Below, in pieces: positions 9,701 to 33,700 of a stretch of DNA of 64,000 nt (position 1 is its first letter; every line of letters begins with the position of its first letter). The notes under the pieces were generated by a model, which had not been told where the DNA came from, did not search any database, and saw only the letters and a program-made list of their open reading frames with translations. The stretch spans positions 8,804,001 to 8,868,000 of the forward strand of contig NC_047079.1 of the NCBI RefSeq assembly GCF_902459465.1, read 5' to 3'. The position numbers and the translations under genes are program-made. This stretch comes from Asterias rubens (taxonomy: Eukaryota).

Positions 9701-12700
9701 CTTGAAAATGTAGAAATGAGTGAAATAACTTACAGTTTGAAGCATATCATCTTGTCTGATCAGCCATCGGCTTCTGTCATGTTTGAACTGTTTAAAAATG
9801 GAAAAAAACATGGCATTATCGTAACAAAGTTGTGACTCAAAACATCAAGGGAGGGGGGGGGGGGTGTAATACTTTGACACATACATTAATTGATAAAGAT
9901 TGATAAGTGATGGCGCTGTCCAATTTTAGAGACACTCCAAGACTAGTTGACTTGAGAATCATAAATTTTTAAACTATTGTTACACGTTTTAAGGATGTGA
10001 TTGATGTCAAGAGTATTATATTCATATTTTGTCATATTGCCTTTTTTTAGGGTAAATATTATGTGACCAGGAACAATCTGATAATAGTCATTAACCAGTC
10101 TTTATAAAGTGCATTGAACACTGAAGGCGCATCTCAAAGCGCTTCACATTATTACCCCCTGGTCACTAGGCCTTAAATCATTCCTTAAATCATCTCACTC
10201 CCTGGGGAGTATACAGCCTTGTGCAACAAATATGCACTACTCGGCTAAATCAATCACAAGAACCATCTCAGCTCTCACAGGTACCCATAACCCCTGGGTG
10301 GAGAGAAGCATGAAGTGTCTTGCTCAGGGACACAAGTGTCGCGACAGCTGAACCCACACTCTGCTGAACAGAATCACAAGAGCGTGAGTTCGGTGCTCTT
10401 GTCCGCTCGGCCACGACACCCTACAAGATGGGAACACGGCACAAGTCTGCTGCCACCTAGCGTTCTAAAGTCTCTCACAGAGGCGAAACAACTCAAAGAG
10501 TGAATTTCAATAGTTGCCCAGGATTAAAAACTAACCTTGCTGGAGAATTTGACATTGAGGCATTTCATGAGTTGCTTGACGGCGTATCGTTGCTCACTCT
10601 GCCGTTTCCTTTCATTCAAGACGCTAGCTAGCGTCTCTAGTTTGGTCAGTGCCAGCTGTAGAGGCATGCGGTCTGCATGGCCTAGAGGAGTTCGCTTTAA
10701 AAGATCCTGGAGAAGGAGTCAAGAGAAAAAAGGCTATCAGGTTAATTCTCATTTAAAGGTTTTGGTACCTTTTGTAGATCATGTTTTTGGCCATGACATG
10801 AATCCATACTCACTGTGCACAAAGATGTATGTAATATAATTTACCTGTAAAAGTTTCAGCTTTCATTCGTCGTCAAGTTTTTTAGCAAAAAAACAAAAAT
10901 CACAGAGCAATGTTTTCAGGAGAGTCACGTTAATCCGTTGTCTCACTGAGCCAAAAACTATTTTTGTGAATTTGTTAACTAATTTCTCAAAAACTATGAT
11001 GTGGGCATTCTGGGATCTTTGTCAATAGAGGGCAGTATATAAAGTCCCCATAGAAAATGAAACAGGGATCCCGCCTGAATAAAGAAATCCCGGTTAAATT
11101 CAGGGATATTAGTGTTATTACATGGCAGCAATGCAAACATTACAATAGACATTTTTACAGGGGATGGGGGTGCTGGAGGCAAATAATTTGTTTTGATACA
11201 GGTAGATCATTCATGGAGAAGACAGAATACAATTTTCGGGGAGAGGGTTGGAGGGGGAGTAGATAAGTCATTCCTGGACAAGACAGAAAACAATATTACG
11301 GGAGGGGGTGGCGGGGGGGGGGGGGGTAATAGATAAGTCGTTTCTGGAGAAGACAGAAAACCATATAACGGGAGGGGGTGGGGGGGAGTAGATGGGTCAT
11401 ACCTGGAGAAGACAGATGAATTGAGGGAAGCGTTGAATAGGTTTCAGCATGAGTGCATAGAGACTCAGACGATCAATGCTACTGACTTGCCGTGTCTAAT
11501 GAGATCAAGAACAAAAACAGTTATTAGAAGGAGTGGTGATTAGTATAGGGCAGTAGTATGGCCAGTACAGCCATGGTCGTAATAAAAATAAAAATAACAA
11601 GTTTTTGTATATAGACGATGTGACCTATGTTTATATTCAAACCGCCCTCTGATGACAAAACACTGTACACGTCATGTTTCGCCGGGCAAAAAGGTGCGTA
11701 GTCATGGTAAGATTGCGAGTACTTTCTAGCTGGCTGCCAAAACACAAAGGTTTTGCTAGGCGGTATGCGCGCGAATCATGTTATGGTTTTTGAGTGACAT
11801 CAGAGGTCACATCGTCTATAGTGCTTTTCACTCCTGAAGGGCGTCTCAAGGCACTTCCAACATTGTTACCCCTGGTCACTGGGCCTTCATTCATTCCTAA
11901 AACCATCTCAGCTCCCTGGTGGGGAGTACGCAGCCTGTGCAACATTAATATGCACTACTCGGCTAAAGCAATCACAAGAACCATATCTGCCCTCACAGGT
12001 ACCCATTTACCCCTGGGTGGAGAGAAGCAATTATAGTTAAGTGACACAAGTGACACAAGTGTAACAACTGAGATTCAAACCCACGCTCTGCTAAAGAGTG
12101 ACAGGGTACCGGTCATGAAAGCTCACCTCGATGAAGTTCCTGAACGCTGGCCTCTGATTGGCTGCTCTCTTGGCCACCTCCATTGCATTGGTGAAGTTGT
12201 TAACGTAGGCACTGTACACGTCTAATACCATCGCTTTAGAAAACTGAAAGGAGACAGTGGGATCAACTTAACTTAACTTAACTTTAATGCATTTATAAAG
12301 CGCTGTAACACTGTTTCAAAGTGCTGTTTCAATGTAGAAGTTAAGATTGACGATGTCGTCGCTACTGTGATTCAAATTCTTTTTTTTTTTAAACTTTTTT
12401 TTAATATTATTATTATTATTTTATTTTTTTTATTTTTATGGAAGTAGCCAGACACACAAGGCCCGAAGGCCACTTCAAGGTGTGGGCTACAATTATTTTT
12501 TCCAGAGGCCGTTGCCACCTACTCCTAGGGCTGAAACAGGGTTACCCCCTTCAGCATCCATATGAATGTGGGCTTGGGTATCATCAATCAGAAGCATGGC
12601 TAGTTGAGTAGAAAGCAATACCTCTCAAATTTTACGTAGGAAGTGTCACGACTAAACTTTTGTTTGCATAAGTATTTCTACTGTACTTTGTGGAAATGGC

Positions 12701-15700
12701 CGAAATGATCGATACTAAAATATTAATAATAATAACACTATGGAAACAAATTAATTTGATGGATAAGTATTCTGTTACCGATGCAACAAAGACATCTCCA
12801 ATCTGATCTGATGAGTCCCAGTTCTTGACTCGGCTGGATAGAGCGATCTGGAACATGAGATGACACTGGTAGATGCCTCGTACTCGGTAGAAGATCATTC
12901 GAACCTTCTCCTTCTCAAGTAGCGGTGGGTTACTGTCCAACAGAGGTTTCTCATAGGCCTACGGCGGGAAAATAAAATCTTAAAGGCAAAGTATACCTCA
13001 AAAGCACTGGACACTATTGGTATAAACTTACTTGGTAACAAGCAATGGAGAGCTGTTGATAGTATAAAACATTGTGAGAAACGGCTCTCTCTGAAGTAAC
13101 GTAGTTTTTGGAAAAAGTGGTAATTTTTCATATCATTAATTTCTGGTAGTGAAACCAAGGATGTCTCAATAATGAACTTAATCACTGTAGCTTGCAAGCC
13201 TCAGGAAACCTGGAAAGGGTGCTTACTATTTATACAAAGAAATACAAGGGTTAATCCCTACTCTTCAATGAAAGTGTTGTGGGTTCTTATACGGGCACTA
13301 TCGATACTACAGTTTAGTATCCTTTTTTTATCATATATACAAAAAGAGCCTGAAAAATCTAGCAATGATCACCAGCTTTCACAACCAGCAAAAAAAAGGG
13401 CTTCCAAGAATAACATCTTTTTTTATAAATTGTTGGGGAGAAAAGGTTAAACCAACCTGGATAAGTCTCTGAAGGGAGAGCATGTATGATCGTTCGCTGT
13501 CGATGATCGATTGGACAACGTGCCTCCGCACCACCTCCTCCGTCGTCAATCCCTTGGGTTGGGGAGGCAAGGCGGGTGGCGGGTGCTTGACCTGCGACAA
13601 CTTTACATCGATGTAGTGGATATCGTCTTTGTCTGCGAAATGATCAGCGAGAATAGCAGGGATGAGAATTTTTGAAATTCTTCCCAAAAACTAAGCCTTC
13701 GACCCAGTTTCACAGAGCTGCTATTTGAACAAAAAGAACTAAGCACAAAAAAATTATGAGCAATGAGCAAATTCCTTCCCAAAAATAAGCCACTTGCTAA
13801 GCACATTATTGCCTTGTATCGCTTAGCAGGATCAGGTGACCAGCAAAAATTACATTAACTTTGCACTGTTGTGGCTCGTGCCCCACTCAATTTTTGCTAA
13901 GCAAACAAAATTGTCAAGCAGTATTTTCTACGTACAGGCTTCATGAAATTTGGCACTGGTTTCGCTGTCACTGTTACTCACATCACATGTACGTTTGTCA
14001 CGTTCTTAAGACAATTTCTACTGTACATTCGAATGTGAAAGAAACAGGAGTTTTTTTTCTTAACTGTTTTACAAAGATCCTGAGAAAGTCTGTGCCCACT
14101 CAACATTCCCCAGTGGGGTTGTGATAAGTGGTCGTCTGCAAATGTTGTCAGTAATGACTGATGACGGAATGCAAAGGTGGCATTCAAACTGAGTTAAGTT
14201 TGCCAGCACTATTAGTACCCATGGGGTTCTGATGGATGTGGGTCTTTTTTTCTTTAAAGACACTGGACACTAGTGGTAATTACTCAAAATAATTGTTAGC
14301 ATAAAAACTTACTTGGTAACAAGCAATGGAGAGCTATTAATACTATAAACATTGGGAGAAACGGCTCCCTCTGAAGTGACATATTTCATGAGAAAGAGGT
14401 AATTTCTCACTCAAATATTAAAAGGCTTTAAAGCATTTTCAAGCATCTGCTGAAATTACACAAATTTGTGCAACTATGGGTGTTTTTTCTTTCATTATTC
14501 TATTGCAACTTCGATGACCAATTGGGTTCAAATTTTCTCAGGTTTGTTATCTTATAATGCATATGTTGGGATACACCAAATGAGAATACTGGCCTTTGAC
14601 AATTACCAAAATGTCCAGTGCCTTTAAAGGAAGGCAGTTGTAAGCGTTTACTGGCTCAATGCAAACACTTTTTTCGAAAACACAGTCGGTTGAGAATAAA
14701 ACCAATACTGCTCCGGTGAAATTGATTACAGTCAGTCCTCTACTGTTGGTTTAGGGCCACACCAATAGACAGTTGATGGTGTTTTTAGAGTACAGGTAGG
14801 CCATGTCCAAATTAGTGGCTACAGCTACGGCTACAGCTACGGCTAAAGCTAGGTTTCTGGGTCATTTCCTACTAACCCATAAAACATGCTTGACAGAACC
14901 ACAGAATTCCCAGCTTCTGCAAGCCGCCGATTCTTTGCTTATAGTAGGCAGATGAAATTGGGCCCAGATAACAAATATCGACGATGCAGAATTCCTGAAG
15001 CAACCCTGACGCCTTACCTTCATCCATATCCTCCTTCTCCTCTTCTTTAGGTCCTGCGTTTCGTCCGAACAGGAAGTTTCTGACTTTGTCCAGATTGCTT
15101 CTCCCCTTGTACTCTTTCAGCTAGACACAAAGAATAATAATTGCATATAATTATGTAAGGATACTTGATTTGCTCAGGTTATTTCAATTAGAAGCAGGTG
15201 TTTATGATGCAGGGATGTGATAGGCTGTTGAGAAAAAAAGAAGAACTCTGAGCGCAAAGTGCGAAAGCAAGCAGGCTGGAAAACTTGCAAGCATGAATGC
15301 CAATATTTACATTTATTTTTGGTTTTAAAAGTCCTACTCTGCATTACGATATGGTAATATTATCTCCATTTCTTTCAGCATTTGATCTTTAAAAAAAGCC
15401 ATACCCTCCCTTTAAATTTACTAATGAAAAAATTAAAGGTTTACAAAAAAAACCTAACATAACCTTTTCAAAACCTGCCATGCTGTAGTATCACTTTCCA
15501 ACCCAACCCTACCCAGGTTAAAAATATCCACATTATTCTTACCCTGAACTCATCAGGCTAGAATAAACAATAGGCCAGACAACCTGATCATCCCCCCTAA
15601 GGGATGAGAAGCGAACCCCCCCCCCCCTCCTCCACCCCTCTCTTCCTTTCGCAAATGTCTTACGCTCCGAGAGTTTGGTGATCACTCCCAACACCATCTC

Positions 15701-18700
15701 ATCCCTGGCCTTAAATAAAAATAACTTGTTTAGCGTCCTGCCTTTTTAGAAAAAAAAGGAGCCTTTTAGTTTTGGGTAAATTTTTTCAAAAGGGCTGCAC
15801 AACACAATTTTGAAGAGAACCGGCTGTATTTTTCAAAATTTACTTTCCTTAATACTTGTAGTGTATCCTACATTTTTTCATAAAAAACAGAAACAAAAAG
15901 AAAGAAAGGAGGCAGCCCCTAAAAAGGACTGAGTTGCTAAAAAAGGAAGCGAGACGCTAACCTTTTTTGCCTAACAGTGCCCTTCGTTTCTAGCCGCCAT
16001 GCAGGGATAATGCAAAGAAGTATCTTGCGTCACAAAGTGAATAGCGAATGAGGTACGCAACATGCGTGCATAGTTGACGGGTTTCATTGACACTAATGTG
16101 ATGAGTAGCTACAACATTGCATACGCATGGCTAATGAAAAGAGCCTCCATAAAACCAACAAACCCCGTCACAACGTTTAAATATTCATAATTTGCCCCTT
16201 ATTACTGACATCTGCTTTGCCCGGGGTGTTCGCAACCCCATCTTCCATCACAAACCATCCTGTGTAGGCGTCAGACTTGATACTTGAAGCGATTGCCTCC
16301 ATGCCACATGGTGATTGCCTAGGTGCCCTTGAAATGGTCTACAGTAGAAATTTACAATTTCCTCATACACATATAGGATGCCCTTTACCAAGGAGAAAAG
16401 AAAATGCCTTGGTGTCTTTGCCCTTACAAAAAGTGAAGCATACAGGCCTAAGGCATTGTCTTTTTTGAAAGAGGATATTCAGAGTCAAAACATCGTGAAC
16501 TCAAGAAACAAAAAAGAAAATCTACTCTGCGGCAGTAGAATATCGCAAGACAGTTCTAAAGAACAAACTCTACCTGGTGTTACCGCAAACCAAATATAAA
16601 TAAACAAATAAAAATTACAAAAAATTATATCCTTACCTCTCACATAAAACCAATTGACAAAGAAAAAACAAACTGTAACAGAACACAAACATTCACTGCG
16701 GATCTAAGATGTTTCTTACAACAAAACAATTTTTGGACAAGAAAAACAACCCAAAAAACAAAGGGGATGTATTGAAAGCATATTCGCAGGAAAAAAAATG
16801 GCTGTGTATTTTATTTGTTTGAAACATTTTTTTTTTTTTGCATGCTTCTTGGGAACAAGAACTGCTGAATAAAAATACAATCGTGTACCCCAAAAAAAAT
16901 TAGTTAAAAAAATACACAAACGAAAAACCGCAACCCAAAAGCACAACTGTAGGGAAATGCTGTCAGTCAATAGTTTGGCTCAAGACATTAGTGACCCATA
17001 GTGGATTATTCGCTTTGTTGTTTGTAGTAATTAGTAATCGCGCGCCCTCTGTTGGCAATATTTAGCCAACTTGACCAGAAGGTCTTGAGCCAAGACTATT
17101 ACTAATCCACCTTTTATCATGATTAGTAGAACCACTACTCACCCACTCGAGATAAGACTACAGACAGAGGTGCAGGTTGACAGAAGGGGTGACAAACAGT
17201 GTGACAGGTGGGGTGATAGATGGGTGGTGAAAATGCAGGGAAGGAAAAAAAACACAGGGAGAAAATGTAGAAATGAAAAAGATGTAAGTAAAATATGAGA
17301 CAGATAAATTTATATAATCTGGAACCAGGTTAGTGTCAAAGCTGCCGCCCCCTCCTTCTTGTTCTTAATGCACATATTGTACATTAAATGATACTGTAGG
17401 ACCAGCAAAGTGAGCTTAAAGATTAATATGGGCTTTAAAGATTACCCCTTTTAGAGAACAAAATGCCAATAGCGGCCACAAATGGCTGCAAGATTTGACT
17501 AACATTTGTATAGTGTGTACGTGGGACAAACTTGGAAGTTTGCCCAGACATACCATGTAGGCCAGGCCAGGTCACCCCCCCCCCCCTCCTCTGGGCTATT
17601 ATACTACCCTTGTTCTAAACAGTCTTGGTAACATACAATACATACATTGCCAGTAGAACGAGAGCCAACAAAAGTTACTTCAAAGATTAATATAGAAGCA
17701 TTTAGCCGCAACCCCATCAGGAATTCCCCAAATTAATTGATTATTCACAGGTGTATTGCATTTATCTTTTCTGTTGCGAGTACATGTAGAAGGATCGACT
17801 GCAAAGATTTAAATACAGATGGGGCTTTAATGTCAGCCCTAAGCATTAATAAAGAATTTGCATTTGAAAGCAAGCTGGCTTAGGTATGGTAACATATAAT
17901 GTATGTGGCTTTCAATGCATAAATGTATAATTTACATGTATGTGCACTTTGACGATGCAGGCTTGGGCAGGCTTGATACTTCATAGGCAATGAAGGCGAT
18001 TGCCTCCGTGCCCCCTGGACATTACCTTGGTGCAGTATTCTCCAGTAGAAATTTAAAATGTCCTCATAGGGTGCCATTCACCAAAGAAAAAATGCCTAAG
18101 TTGGTGTTTAGTCCCTTGCCCTTTCAAAAACAAAGCATACAGGCCTGAGTCTATGTTCTTTTGTTTGAAACTATTGTTCAAATCCTATAAATGTTGACAT
18201 CTCCATGAATCAGTTGCAGAGACTGAAGATGGCTCATGTGCAATTTTAGACTTCTTACTTTCATTTGTAAGAATTCTGTTGTCTCTTCACATATATTCCT
18301 TTGAGGTATCCATGCTGTCTATTTTTAGAGCACAAAAGCAAGCAACTGTCATTACAATGTTAAAGGCAATGGACACTATTGGTAATTACTCAAAATAATT
18401 GTAAGCATAAAAACTTATTTGGTAACAAACAACGGAGAGCTGTTGAAAGTATAAAACATTGTGAGAAACGGCCCCCTCTGAAGTAAAGTAGTGTTTGAGA
18501 AAGAGCCAATTTCTTACTCAAATATTAAAAGACTTCAGGCCTGAATCCTTTTATTATGCATCTGACATGCTGAAAGCACACACATTTGTGCAACAAGGGT
18601 GTTTTTTCTTTCATTATTCTCTTAAAATTTGGATGACCAATTTAGCCCAAATGTTTACAGGTTTGTTATTTTATGCATCTATGTTGGGATACACCAAGTG

Positions 18701-21700
18701 AGAGTACTGGTCTTTGACAATTACCAAACGTATCCAGTGCCTTTAAATACCAACTGTACTGGTGAAGGATAGCAACTAAGTGTCCTGATAGACAGAGTCC
18801 CCCAGAAGCACCGCATGAACAATAGAGAGATGACAGCCCAGAGGCCTCAGAGGAAATTACAAAATTACAAGAATCCCCAAATGTTTTGGGTTGACTCTCT
18901 CGGGATTTTGTCGAATAAAACCGATTGTGACATTTGTGACAAATGGCAGCATCAGCGGAAATGAAATTGGCTTTTATAATTTATGACTTATCTTAGAGTT
19001 TCATTAGATTGGAATTATTTTATAGATACGAGGACAAATCGCTTGGTAATTACCTTCTAATTAAGCGTTACAGGACTTTGCTTTGTGCAAGTAATCATGG
19101 AAAATCTCAAAATTTGAGGGGTGGAATAGTATTTTGAAATAATATTGAAGAGACAAAAACAAATTTTTTATTTTGTAAAGATGTTTTCCAAAAGTACTTA
19201 GCAAAGACATTCTATGCCAAATCGAAACACATTTCAGACTTTCTTTAATTTTGCTAAAATTGTTACCCAAGTACAGGTGTTTGGGGGTCATGTGGTTTAA
19301 AGGTTGTCACACTGAGTTTTTTTCACAACTTTTAAGTTCTTTATTTCCAACAAGTTTGGAAACTGTTCGAACAGAATTGCAGGGTAAATATCACAGTTTC
19401 TTTAAATCTGCTAAACATTCAAGTATTTGGGGTCATGTGGTTTAAAGGTCGTTGAACTTTGGACCTTGAGTTTTTTTTTAAACAACTTTGAATTTCTTCA
19501 CACACTGGTTTGGGGTTCAAAGAAACATGATTCATACAGTTAATGTTGCAGATTTGACACTGAATGAACCGATTATAAAAACACTGATGCTGCATATATA
19601 ATGTTTGCTTCCTCTAATTCTGTTTTTCCCCCAAAGCAAACTCTGAAAGACGCAGAAGAGTGGTCATAATAACGACCAACGTGAACAGTGAATGGACTGC
19701 CTGTAACAATAAGAAATTACTAAAAGGTCTTCCTCTTAAACAACCAACGTGAACAGTGAATGGACTGCCTGTAACAATAAGAAATTACTAAAAGGTCTTC
19801 CTCTTAATATTTTTTCTGACGGCTGTAATTTTTGCGTTTGATTGACGAAATCCCGAGGGGGGGGGGGGATGGAGTGTAAGTGCTTTCGAGTCTTGAGAAT
19901 GGACTGGAGTTAATGCTTGTGGATCTTTGGATGCGGCATAAAGATGGCATGATTAATACCTTGGGTACATTTTTCGCTGTCTGAGGGAATTCCAAGTTGG
20001 TTGACGCAGAGTCCTATTGACAATCAAGGAAATAAATAAATACAAACTACTGTACAATGTATGTTTACAAGAATTCATCTCCTCAAATCTGACACCGCCA
20101 ACATAGGGCTAGATAGCTCAGTTGGTAGAGCGCCGGCTCATTAATCTGGAGGTCTTTGGTTCGAATCCCACTCTCTAGTTAGTTCTTAGTTCAACCCCAC
20201 AAATCTGAAGCGAGTACATTTATGTCTAAGCAGGAAGAATAATCCTCAATTGGAATAAAAACCTGAGAAACATTTTTGACAGTAATGCTTCTCACATTCA
20301 ATTTTGTGGGGATAACGACTTATTTATTTATATAACCACGTTTATTGAAAAAAAAATGATTCTCAAAACCGAACGCTTCTGTAGTTTGCATTGCTAATTA
20401 CTTAAAAAATGATTACCGAATACTAAACGCAAACCTCCCCTTTAAGCATTTCTTGAAAATTATAATTTGAAGAAATTACTCTGCTACGAAGCTTCAAGTT
20501 TGTGTTTCTTCTGATTTCCCGATGTAGATTCCCCTATTTCTTTCACTTTCTAAAACAATGCATCCAAGTACGTGTTGATGCGATTTTCTGTGAAAAGAAA
20601 ATCCCCACTGAAAGGGAAAGTCTATATTTTTAGATTGAGTAAATTAATTCCAAGGGTTTCCAATTTCATCGAATCAGTGTTCGATTATGTTTGCTTCAGG
20701 GATTTTGTATCAAGATTATTTTGATTGTGGCAATCAAAACAAACAACATTGAATTGTGGGGTTTTTAAATGTTATTTTCTTGACTTTGGGTTTTACTGGA
20801 TACCAACACCAAACCAAAAACTCCAAGGTAAATGCGGTTTGTTTTACAAAAATACATGAAAGTATGGAAATAAATGTGTATTTGAATCGAATTGAAAGGT
20901 AAATCAATGCCTACCTGGGGCTTTTCCTCTTCCCGTCTGTCCATCCCGTACGATGTTACGAGAGAGCGGTTCCTCGTTGACGACCTGTTGTCGACGTTGG
21001 AGGGTCCCTTAGGGAGTGGTGAGTTGGGCTCGATGCAGAAGCTGTGGACCATCTCGCAGTCGCTCTCGTCAGAGTAGCCCTCCCACTCGTCCGATCCCCA
21101 GCTGGAGTCCGAATCCTCCATGAGAAGTTCCTCATCCTCCTCATTGCAATCCAGGAGATCTTCGTAAAGGAGGTCATCGTCAATGAAGAAGCCTGGGTGG
21201 TGATAAGATAGGAGAACTTTTTGGTTTCAAACATTCTATATGATTAATCTTGATTCCCTTTAAGGGCACAGCAGCCGATTTCACGAAACGCTAGAATTAA
21301 TCCTATGTATCTCGTCCGAGGATGGGTCCAATGCGACCTACATGTAACATCTATGGATACAAAACTTATTAAACTCATCCCAAGTCAAAAAATAAATCCT
21401 TAGTTAGGAATAGGAGACTTTCCAACACTAGGCGGCAGCAGACATACCGGGTAAATTTCCATTGTTTACGTAGTTCTGAACATGCGCATAATTCTGAGAA
21501 CAATGGATTTACCCGGTAAGTCTGCTGCCCTCTATCGTCCCAGAAAGTCTCCCATTATTATTATTATTATCATTATTATAATATTTTTTGTTTTTTGGTG
21601 GGGGGGGGGAGTTGCCAATATCCAATAATTAATAAACAATTAATGTGTCCCTATGATCAATTTCTCAAAAACAAATTCTGTACAGATACTGTCTGTACTT

Positions 21701-30700: not shown

Positions 30701-33700
30701 GATATTTATTATTATTATTATTTCACAGCTTAGGTTAGAAAGGAAATGAGACAGTACATTTAATCTAAGCTATTTCTATGAATATGACAGATGTACCCTT
30801 AGAATGAGTTCACATAGAATGTCGTAGAGTTTATACATACAGAGACTGGAGACATGACAGAAGATGGATGTACATGTGACGAAGATGATGAACTCCCCAT
30901 GACGTCTCAGAGAGGTTTTGTAAAACCACAAATACCCTACCTTGATAGATCTCATTGTCATGCCAACCAGCATCTTCCAGATCCTCACCTCCATTTTGGT
31001 TGTGGTATTTATCCCTCCAGTGTGGAGCATCGACCTCGTAGATTGTCGGCTCGGCACTGGAACTCCCATCATGCCTTGGTGTCGGCAACGATGTTTGCTG
31101 AGGTCTGTTCGCTTTGCTGTCACTGGCGAACGATAATAGCGCTCCCGGTGGTTGGTTTGAGAGTTTTTCTATGATCGTTGCAACTTTGACGGACGTGCCT
31201 TTTGTCTCTACGTACTGTGTCGGCATGTCCAGGTTGGTTGGACGATTCTTCTTTGCCTTTGTGTGACCATTAGCTTTGGGTTTGTCTGGAAGCTTTTCAT
31301 CGTCATTGCTGACTGGTCGGAGCACGCCCACACACGCCATGTTGGCTGGAATGACATCGTCGTAAATATCCTCCTCCTTGTCCTCCGACCTATTGTTGGA
31401 ATAGTTTAACTGAGGGCTTTCTACTGGTGGGTTGCCAGGGATGACATCATCATAAATGTCCTCTTCCGTGATTGTTAGTAACTCTGACATATCATGTAGT
31501 CTGTTCTCATCAATATTGCTTTCCGTTTGGTCATTTGTCACCTCAGTGGAGTCAAGGTTTTGCAGTGATTGGCCTCCACTTGGATCGGATATCTGTAAAA
31601 AAGAAAGAAGAAAAAAAACTATAAATAAATAGTAAACCTGCAGGTACAACCGTGTAAATCTCTTATGAGTATGAGTACATACTGTTCGAAACGTCAAGAC
31701 TGAACAATATACTGTTTGTTAGTGCTCCAGAGCACCTCTAAACTTTCAAAGTCACAAAATGATGTGACTTTTATGTGACTCAAGTCCAGCTTTAATACTT
31801 CTCAAAAATCAAATCACATTTAATATCGAGGGAACCTATGAAGACATCGACATCTTCATCCAACAATCTTGTTTAAGACCGTTGATTTGGCAGAACAAAA
31901 ATCAGACTGAAAACCAAAGCCACACACTATCTTCAGTTATCCTATTACGTATGTTAGAATGTATAATGCAGATGATTTGTTTTTGGATCAACAGATCCAA
32001 TGAGTGTCTTATCGCGACGTCAATTCAAATACGCGTAAAGTCTACTGACATTTATACAAGGAATTATCAAATGCGCTATCCATAACCATGGTAACCTATA
32101 AACAGAATCATCTTCGCATCCTCAGAGATCCCTCAAGGAACCTAGTGTACAGAAAACTCAACCCAAAAACCCACTATAACACTTGTTTTTAAAGGCACTG
32201 TACAATATTGGTAGTTACTCAAAATAATTGCTTCAGCATAAAAACTTATTGGTAAAGAGCAAAGGAGAGCTGTTGGTAGTATAAAACATTGTGAGAAACT
32301 GCTCCCTCTCACAAAGTTTTTGAGAAAGACCCAAATACTAAATGCCTTCTTGTGCCACAAGATTGTTTTTTTTTTCTTTAAATATTCTCTTGCAACTTTC
32401 GAAGATCAATTGAGTCCACATTTTAACAGATTTGTTACTTTATAATGCAAATGTTGGGATCACCAAGAGAAAATACTGGTCTTTGACAGTTACCAAAGAC
32501 GTCTGGTGCCTTTAAACTGAAAAAATTGAGTTCTGTGGTCTCAAGTATTTTATGCCAGGAATACCTAGGGAGAACCCCCCCCCCCCCTCTCCTTCTCAGA
32601 GTCTCAAGATTTCAGAAGAAAAAAGAATCAATGATTAACAGAGTACAAATACAGCAGAGAATCATGAAGTCCTCGTTTGTACGGAGCGTACACGCAGTGT
32701 AAGATGAGCTTGCTGAGCTAGGAGTGGGGATTTGCATAGCGAGTGAATTATATTATAGAGAGGTCATGTGTGCGGATGTCATACATGTAGACATCTCCCG
32801 TTTGGCATGTTAACGATTCAATGGATCCCAAACACTGATGATCTAAGAAATTGTACCAAGGATTTGTTGAGATTATTGAATGGGATAACTGGGTATGGGG
32901 AAAAGTTAACTTCACCACTGGACAATGTTATTAAATTTGTAGTGACAAGTAAATGTTGGGCCCTGGATTTTTGCCTGGTAACCAGTTTCTGTCAAGCAAG
33001 ATGTTTTGTGCTTTGCAAGTTTGTTTGTGCTTAGCAATTGTGTTGTGCTACAGGCTTTTAAAATTGGGCCCTGGTCCTGTTAGCTAGTCACTGAAAAAGT
33101 TAGTGGCAAAGCCTGGGGTCTACTGCTAAGCATTCTGTGGTACTTGGGGGGGGGGGGGCAGGGGATGATCATTTCATACTACACCCACAGCTTTGGATAT
33201 TGCCCTGTGCGCGAAAAACACTACCTTGTCCTACTGGTAGAAACATCACTCACTGGAGATTTACAGTTTAATCATGTAGTAATATGCATTTGGTATTCCA
33301 GACTAGATTCAGATACAGCTTCACCCCCCCCCCCCCCCCTCCCCTCCTTCTCCCCTCCTTCTCCCCCAATGGATAAGGTCAATGTTCATGCTCTAATTAA
33401 CTTCCCGGATCGCATGTCGTTTCCTGACCACCGACACCTGTGATCGTGTGATTACATGGATGTGGCACCCCGGTTTCTTAGGTAGCCTCCTCTGCCCCGA
33501 CCGACTTTCCTCCTCCCCTTAAGTTGCCTTGAACTTGAGTGATGGGATGAAGGCTGTTGAGCCAGGGCAATAAGACTGGGAAGGGGGGAGGGAGGGGAAT
33601 AATGAAGTGTAAATGACAGGAGGTTTCATTACTGATGATCGGTATCAGGGGCTCGCGACAAGGGCCCAATTTTGTAGAGCTGAGCTGAGCACAAAAATTT

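Follow-up and report, generated by a model that had tools for sequence, protein, structure and literature searches.

In flies and mammals, exons that depend on the eMIC domain combine long AG-exclusion zones and pyrimidine tracts with a UGC close to the 3′ splice site (PMC8797185; bioRxiv 2024.09.17.613571). A bipartite UCUC...UGC enhancer has been described, with UGC present in 74-79% of SRRM3/4 targets (bioRxiv 2024.09.17.613571), and eMIC programs are described as almost wholly rewired between phyla (PMC8797185). Here, we describe a 15-nucleotide (nt) cassette microexon at 17143..17157 on the minus strand of a 64,000-nt stretch of Asterias rubens DNA (assembly GCF_902459465.1, contig NC_047079.1, positions 8,804,001 to 8,868,000 of the forward strand), which we refer to as the window and which is free of N letters. 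The microexon belongs to an ARHGEF10-like gene, encodes the pentapeptide SYLEW, and is almost certainly a real exon in alternative use. A possible place in a neural microexon program is consistent with every cis feature of the locus and with the presence of a putative eMIC-type gene in the genome, although the sea urchin models hint otherwise.

Compared with the neural microexons controlled by SRRM3/SRRM4 (Srrm234 eMIC), the A. rubens exon is similar in its size (no more than 27 nt), in preserving the reading frame, and in encoding part of a disordered linker beside a signaling domain. The long AG-exclusion zone, the UGC near the 3′ splice site, the long pyrimidine tract, and the conserved flanking intron are likewise shared, as is a strong 5′ splice site of the kind seen in mammals. 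Unlike those exons, it has few UCUC motifs in Asterias and is always included in the sea urchin models; moreover, an ARHGEF10-like host is not among the known targets. Nova-regulated exons, which have YCAY clusters within ~200 nt, provide a second comparison. YCAY motifs are densely packed (7 in 100 nt) and conserved immediately before the starfish exon, but a cluster in this upstream position predicts Nova-dependent skipping rather than inclusion. Ule et al. in 2006 reportedly drew up a Nova RNA map with YCAY clusters, in which upstream binding silences the exon in vertebrates. Vertebrate ARHGEF10 itself resembles the starfish gene in having an optional segment just before a motif that aligns with LKEYKG...LDKVR (proteins P0005/P0008 versus P0007/P0029), whereas, among the sequences compared, the five microexon residues are found in echinoderms only. 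The vertebrate segment is ~30 residues long and ends in YD.K, and the same linker is a hot spot for splicing in those relatives. Homology between the microexon and this segment was considered and rejected, as alignment A2 places them apart.

On the minus strand, the window reads caacctgcacctctgtctgtag, then the exon TCTTATCTCGAGTGG, and then gtgagtag. The acceptor AG (17159-17158) lies directly 5′ of the microexon, whose codons TCT TAT CTC GAG TGG give SYLEW, and the donor GTGAGT follows at 17142-17137 (17137..17142 in forward order). The borders, tag and gtgagt, are canonical, and 15 nt is within the 27-nt limit for microexons. The constitutive exon 4 upstream (20915..21192, minus strand) ends in phase 0 with CCC CAG at 20915, and exon 6 downstream (15018..15120, minus strand) starts in phase 0 with CTG AAA at 15120; it ends in phase 1 with the residues ...DMDE. 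Because the flanking exon ends in phase 0 and the next one starts on a codon, the 15 nt run from phase 0 to phase 0, preserve the frame, and encode SYLEW. A preliminary description of the window had proposed exactly this arrangement of an acceptor AG, 15 nt encoding SYLEW, and a GTGAGT donor in a phase-0 intron, and we located it at 17159-17137.

The same description had given the AG-free, pyrimidine-rich stretch before the acceptor as ~110 nt. Its pyrimidine richness is borne out (a fraction of 0.75-0.77 in the last 100 nt before the acceptor and 0.70 in the last 20), but the stretch is longer than stated, at ~159-161 nt (17320-17159), which ranks second among 3,689 AG-to-AG gaps on the minus strand of the window. 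Together with the acceptor AG, the 159-nt zone spans 17158..17320. At the gene's other ten mapped acceptors, the AG-free zone measures 18-52 nt, except for a single zone of 127 nt that precedes the constitutive-looking, DH-domain exon 10 (11403-11495, minus strand). The donor stands out as well, being the sole full GTRAGT among the gene's first 11 donors; none of the other mapped donors matches this consensus in full. The combination of an AG, 3-27 nt, and GTRAGT, with at least 65% pyrimidines in the upstream 20-mer, occurs in 6 cases on both strands of the 64-kb window, and among these only the microexon has an AG-free zone longer than 43 nt. An origin of the pyrimidine tract from a repeat or transposon was ruled out, as the 241-nt stretch around it is single-copy in the 417.6-Mb genome. 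Two further candidates were also set aside. An internal AG that would yield a 3-nt exon (17145-17143) is backed by no gene model, and an RNA fold pairing the donor GGGUGAG with an upstream CACCC, which is the minimum-energy fold in four species, has energies no better than those of shuffled sequences (z-scores of +0.63, -0.56, +0.10, and +0.53).

The intron immediately upstream of the microexon is conserved. A blastn comparison of Asterias with Acanthaster, made over the 6.2 kb that exons 4 and 6 delimit, aligned only the two flanking exons and, within the 5.8-kb interval, the segment 17230-17137. This conserved island (17137..17230, minus strand) comprises the microexon and ~73 nt of upstream intron, with 82% identity over 95 nt (E 2e-17), and it contains seven YCAY motifs. 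Within it, the 15-nt intronic element CAACCTGCACCTCTG (17165..17179, minus strand, -22..-8 relative to the acceptor) shows no change among A. rubens, A. amurensis, and A. planci, and P. miniata retains 12 of its nucleotides (alignment A1). The element contains the UGC at 17174-17172, that is, at -17..-15, close to the ~16 nt upstream at which a TGC had been noted before. This triplet is conserved in the genomes examined, and together with the AG-free tract and the donor it agrees with the published eMIC code (PMC8797185).

Genomic loci were compared in six species: A. rubens, A. amurensis, A. planci, P. miniata, S. purpuratus, and the crinoid Antedon mediterranea. In all six, a UGC lies 10-18 nt ahead of the AG (at -17 in both Asterias species and S. 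purpuratus, -18 in Acanthaster and Patiria, and -12/-15 in the Antedon candidate), the AG-free zone measures 82-272 nt (110-272 nt in the orthologs, with the crinoid candidate at 82 nt), and a GTRAGT donor, either GTGAGT or GTAAGT, is present (6/6 genomes). The search for the exon and its splice sites in related genomes, which had been put forward as a check, thus returned orthologous exons in A. amurensis, A. planci, P. miniata, and S. purpuratus. The exon of A. amurensis is identical to that of A. rubens (TCT TAT CTC GAG TGG, SYLEW). Both A. planci and P. miniata have TCG TAT CTA GAT TGG (SYLDW), and S. purpuratus has an 18-nt exon, CAA ACG TAC CTG GAA TGG (QTYLEW). In the latter (L006:17160-17177), the microexon takes in the Gln that ends the preceding exon in starfish; it lies 16.6 kb past the upstream exon and ~0.7 kb ahead of the next and is present in all ten models across two annotation releases.

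Protein models extend this picture to more distant relatives. Annotated models carry the insert, [ST]Y.[ED]W, in A. amurensis, Acanthaster, Patiria, Apostichopus, Amphiura, and three sea urchins. Lytechinus and Diadema have SYLEW, the brittle star Amphiura has SYREW, and Apostichopus japonicus, the best full-length representative in the exon 7 search described below, has EEPK-SYMEW-VKMLKD at the equivalent site. SYLEW, SYLDW, SYMEW, SYREW, and (Q)[ST]YLEW are thereby spread over four echinoderm classes, with the Trp invariant and the Tyr nearly so. Codon changes fall mainly at third positions (CTC, CTA, CTG, and CTT for Leu and TAT and TAC for Tyr), which argues for selection on the peptide. 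These comparisons indicate that the exon and its splice sites were already present in the last ancestor shared by starfish, brittle stars, sea urchins, and sea cucumbers, if not earlier, and have been kept ever since.

Crinoids probably share the microexon as well. The corresponding 12.6-kb intron of Antedon contains ttgttgctttctacag, then CAG TCG CCT CTT GTA GAA TGG, and then gtaagt, which would encode (Q)SPLVEW. This candidate 18/21-nt microexon (L005:8885-8905, Antedon mediterranea GCA_964355755.1, OZ206122.1) has the UGC at -12/-15, a strong pyrimidine tract, and a gtaagt donor, and it is the only GARTGG/GTRAG on its strand of the 42.9-kb locus. The single Antedon model, XP_071944892.1, is without the insert, with EETK joined straight to VKSRR; the candidate is likely an unannotated ortholog of the microexon that the gene model apparently missed. 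Outside the echinoderms, the pattern [YF].[EDQ]W was found at the insert site in 0/138 representatives of other animals, including no vertebrate and no hemichordate, and alignment A2 shows the five microexon residues as an insertion confined to echinoderms.

The microexon had been described at first as hidden and missed by gene predictors, a claim that does not survive comparison with public annotation. RefSeq isoform X3 (XP_033641961.1) includes it, and eight other echinoderms have models with it too. This isoform, a computed prediction, reads EEKPQ-SYLEW-LKEYKG, identical to the window, and its spliced mapping is exact through residue 673, with 17157-17143 as exon 5; other exons match the window at 98-100% (tblastn). 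Isoforms X1 and X5 likewise map exactly on the window, the former with a second alternative cassette exon of 54 nt (19960..20013, minus strand; RefSeq X1/X2/X4) and the latter with neither exon. The A. rubens models therefore include the microexon only in X3, the 54-nt exon only in X1, X2, and X4, both in none, and neither in X5. In A. amurensis, the microexon alone is found in X2, the upstream alternative exon alone in X1 and X3, both in none, and neither in X4. The Acanthaster planci models comprise the microexon alone in X5, the upstream exon alone in X3, both in X1, X2, and X4, and neither in X6. In Patiria miniata and Apostichopus japonicus, no model has the upstream exon, either alone or with the microexon; the microexon is present in X1, X2, X4, and X5 of the former and in X1, X3, X4, and X5 of the latter, and neither exon is found in Patiria X3 or Apostichopus X2.

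Inclusion and skipping are therefore both represented among the A. rubens RefSeq models, with similar pairs in four more species, all of them gene models and not reads. The microexon is also skipped in a full-length transcript contig of another holothurian (P0139). Overall, it appears to be optional in starfish and sea cucumbers and always included in the sea urchin models. The 54-nt exon has a 66-nt counterpart in A. planci, which ends in QTQKTPK, and is too diverged to align with Acanthaster by blastn. The two alternative exons occur together in no model of either Asterias species, yet they do so in Acanthaster models. This bears on the product, (K)SYLEW-LKEYKG, that had been predicted for the inclusion form. 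SYLEW-LKEYKG is what X3 encodes, but the junction with (K) occurs in no Asterias model and is found only in Acanthaster X1/X2/X4. A literature search returned no paper on this exon, and the link between ARHGEF10 and microexons was limited to one incidental co-mention.

By its predicted protein, the host gene is an A. rubens ARHGEF10-like gene with DH, PH, and WD40 domains. A 58-residue query (13630-13457) from exon 7 (13457..13632, minus strand), which leads into the DH domain, matched ARHGEF10-like proteins. Pfam assigns RhoGEF to residues 448-629 of XP_033641961.1 (E 1.5e-39), PH_19 to 653-803, and WD40_2 to 913-1410 (E 1.2e-94), and this order of a DH domain, an atypical PH domain, and a C-terminal WD40-like propeller fits the ARHGEF10/ARHGEF10L/ARHGEF17 family of RhoGEFs. 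SYLEW occupies residues 371-375, 73 residues ahead of the DH domain, which agrees with the earlier placement of the exon upstream of the DH domain of a RhoGEF. AlphaFold2 modeling of residues 350-659 with 22 aligned relatives gave a confident DH domain and a disordered linker, with one short low-confidence helix on YLEWLKEY and another on LDKVRNFLF. Many regulated microexons fall in disordered linkers. Chaya et al. in 2011 reportedly described a negative regulatory region for exchange activity in ARHGEF10, and this region is said to lie N-terminal to the DH domain. The ARHGEF10 gene family is associated with nerve phenotypes in dogs, humans, and flies.

The A. rubens genome also contains a candidate for the splicing factor. 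RS-rich frames begin ~45 kb downstream of a cwf21 domain match (C5:20896799-20896870), on the same strand, and a scan of these frames located an SRRM_C segment. The frames lie just upstream of this segment, in the region C5:~20942200-20945000. The segment is a 76-amino-acid reading frame at C5:~20943433 (L017:3434-3661), 46.7 kb downstream of the cwf21 match and again on the same strand, and it passes the Pfam profile SRRM_C (PF15230) with 28 bits against a cut-off of 27 (E 3.4e-6). SRRM_C corresponds to the eMIC region, and the locus fits a putative Srrm234 gene with an eMIC-type C terminus. A second cwf21 match was noted at C14:15058160-15058273, beside a long RS-rich frame. A degenerate DNA pattern for a C-terminal SRRM motif gave 0 matches and was dropped as unreliable.

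From these elements, a mechanism can be proposed. An exon of 15 nt would be too short for the usual cross-exon definition, and a distant upstream branch point and pyrimidine tract, set back by the 159-nt AG-free zone, would make for a weak 3′ splice site, for which the perfect GTGAGT donor would partly compensate. Inclusion would then require that an enhancer factor bind the conserved UGC, ~17 nt ahead of the AG, and the likeliest factor would be an eMIC-bearing isoform of Srrm234, its SRRM_C segment being the one encoded in the genome. A requirement for eMIC would make inclusion dependent on cell type and probably enriched in neurons. In the protein, the insert would add SYLEW at the start of the short, helix-prone motif YLEWLKEY in the disordered linker. 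As to function, we infer only that SYLEW may alter an intra- or intermolecular contact that tunes guanine nucleotide exchange factor activity, whether this is autoinhibition or contact with a partner. On the explanation as a whole, that of a real, conserved cassette microexon with Srrm234/eMIC-driven inclusion, our confidence is evenly divided. That inclusion is both SRRM/eMIC-dependent and neural-enriched in starfish is a close call that leans very slightly toward the negative.

Several observations weigh against the eMIC explanation, and some of these point to a genuine, conserved microexon that does not act as an SRRM/eMIC neural switch. Such an exon might be included broadly or near-constitutively, or it might be controlled by other tissue or stage factors that read the upstream island; a Nova-type protein could bind the YCAY cluster, for example, or a PTB-type repressor the pyrimidine tract. 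Asterias has few UCUC/CUCU motifs, which in the bipartite enhancer would lie within ~50 nt upstream of the UGC: the last 100 nt contain 1, compared with 5 in Acanthaster. YCAY motifs, for their part, number 7 per 100 nt upstream in each of three starfish, against 1.6 on average in the background, where only 0.55% of windows reach 7; a shuffle preserving composition gives P = 0.011. This enrichment supports a Nova-type or other reader, but it is partly due to the C/T/A-rich, G-poor composition of the region. The conserved island runs ~55 nt past the UGC element, and the UGC itself, present in only 74-79% of SRRM3/4-dependent microexons, is not strictly needed and, as a 3-nt motif, is weak evidence alone. 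Its distance from the AG is nevertheless nearly constant (-10..-18) across starfish, sea urchin, and the crinoid candidate, even though the intron is otherwise unalignable between classes. The exon has the eMIC-type architecture, and the genome has an SRRM_C segment, but the match to this profile is 1 bit over the cut-off and covers 29/67 positions, and an uninformative six-frame genome search with PF15230, for which the control genomes were all prokaryotic and which missed the segment, returned no match. The helix on YLEWLKEY has a predicted local distance difference test (pLDDT) score below 50. Finally, the microexon is present in 10/10 S. purpuratus models, in the single Lytechinus and Diadema models, and in 4/5 Apostichopus models. 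Inclusion in these animals may thus be broad rather than neural, and for sea urchins this is a hint that the exon is no strictly neural switch. We consider a real exon that is not an eMIC neural switch a strong contender, the probability of this reading falling just short of one-half.

A more radical alternative is that the exon is not real at all, being a chance AG...GT in the low-complexity pyrimidine tract that was annotated and then propagated by protein-to-genome alignment. Gene models can indeed spread between species in this way, which also weakens the case for conserved alternative use, and the transcript data would at first sight favor this view. Four RNA-like runs, their names coded, were compared, as assembled Logan contigs, with the region 15010-21009. 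No contig among the four runs has the 15 nt, and the joint table is dominated by intronic repeats and lists no microexon joint; no contig spanning the junctions was recovered, and unspliced contigs span 17065-17242. Among transcript-derived protein fragments across the junction, none has the pentapeptide, the only ones present being open reading frames that run from the upstream exon into the intron or pieces of the DH domain. However, because the exon is shorter than the 31-letter assembly word, and is too short for contig-based placement, the absence of a contig piece for it is uninformative and carries no weight against the exon. Long spliced contigs stop exactly at 20915 (coded runs X3 and X5), and contigs of the downstream exon stop at 15121/15122 (coded runs X3, X4, and X5). 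Assembly graphs break where transcripts branch, and these ends accordingly point to branching of the transcripts at both flanking exons. Coded runs X3 and X5 keep two shared letters (AG) at the end of the downstream contig, which fits branches that skip the microexon, use the 54-nt exon, or remain unspliced better than it fits inclusion; in coded run X4 alone, the downstream contig ends after one shared letter. Chance is difficult to reconcile with splice sites, frame, and peptide that are kept in the genomes of three echinoderm classes with mainly third-position changes, with a flanking intron conserved to the same degree as coding exons, or with a configuration that is unique in 128 kb counting both strands. 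We regard a spurious exon as highly improbable.

Other features of the locus were noted in passing. The intronic repeats that dominate the joint table (18210-18800, 16210-16600, 17810-18200, and 20010-20200) have huge summed contig depth and many internal joints in all four runs. At 18210-18800, the summed depth is 10^5-10^6, and these are probably abundant transcribed interspersed repeats. Exon 2 (30941-31592, minus strand) encodes two near-identical acidic tyrosine motifs in the N-terminal region. Within the part of the protein that this exon encodes, two ENA-derived fragments (P0155 and P0156) are set apart by an internal segment, which suggests more alternative splicing in the gene.

As the discovery of a hidden exon, this result has no weight, as public annotation has the exon. 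Its value is comparative, in that echinoderm classes have kept as one set a 15-nt exon, its perfect donor, an AG-free zone of great length, and a UGC ~17 nt upstream, and this deeply conserved echinoderm candidate is a concrete test case for the age of individual eMIC targets. The boldest form of the idea is that the microexon has been an echinoderm-wide target of the ancestral Srrm234-eMIC neural program for ~500 million years and is kept in starfish as a neural switch that tunes the regulatory linker of a RhoGEF, with the UGC enhancer held at the same spacing in starfish, sea urchins, and crinoids. The host gene has relatives in vertebrates and flies with roles in nerves and motor neurons. 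Going by the comparisons above, we think this idea rather unlikely. If it were true, the microexon and its regulator would be among the first such pairs traceable across a whole non-vertebrate phylum, and they would provide a counter-example to the reported near-complete rewiring of eMIC targets.

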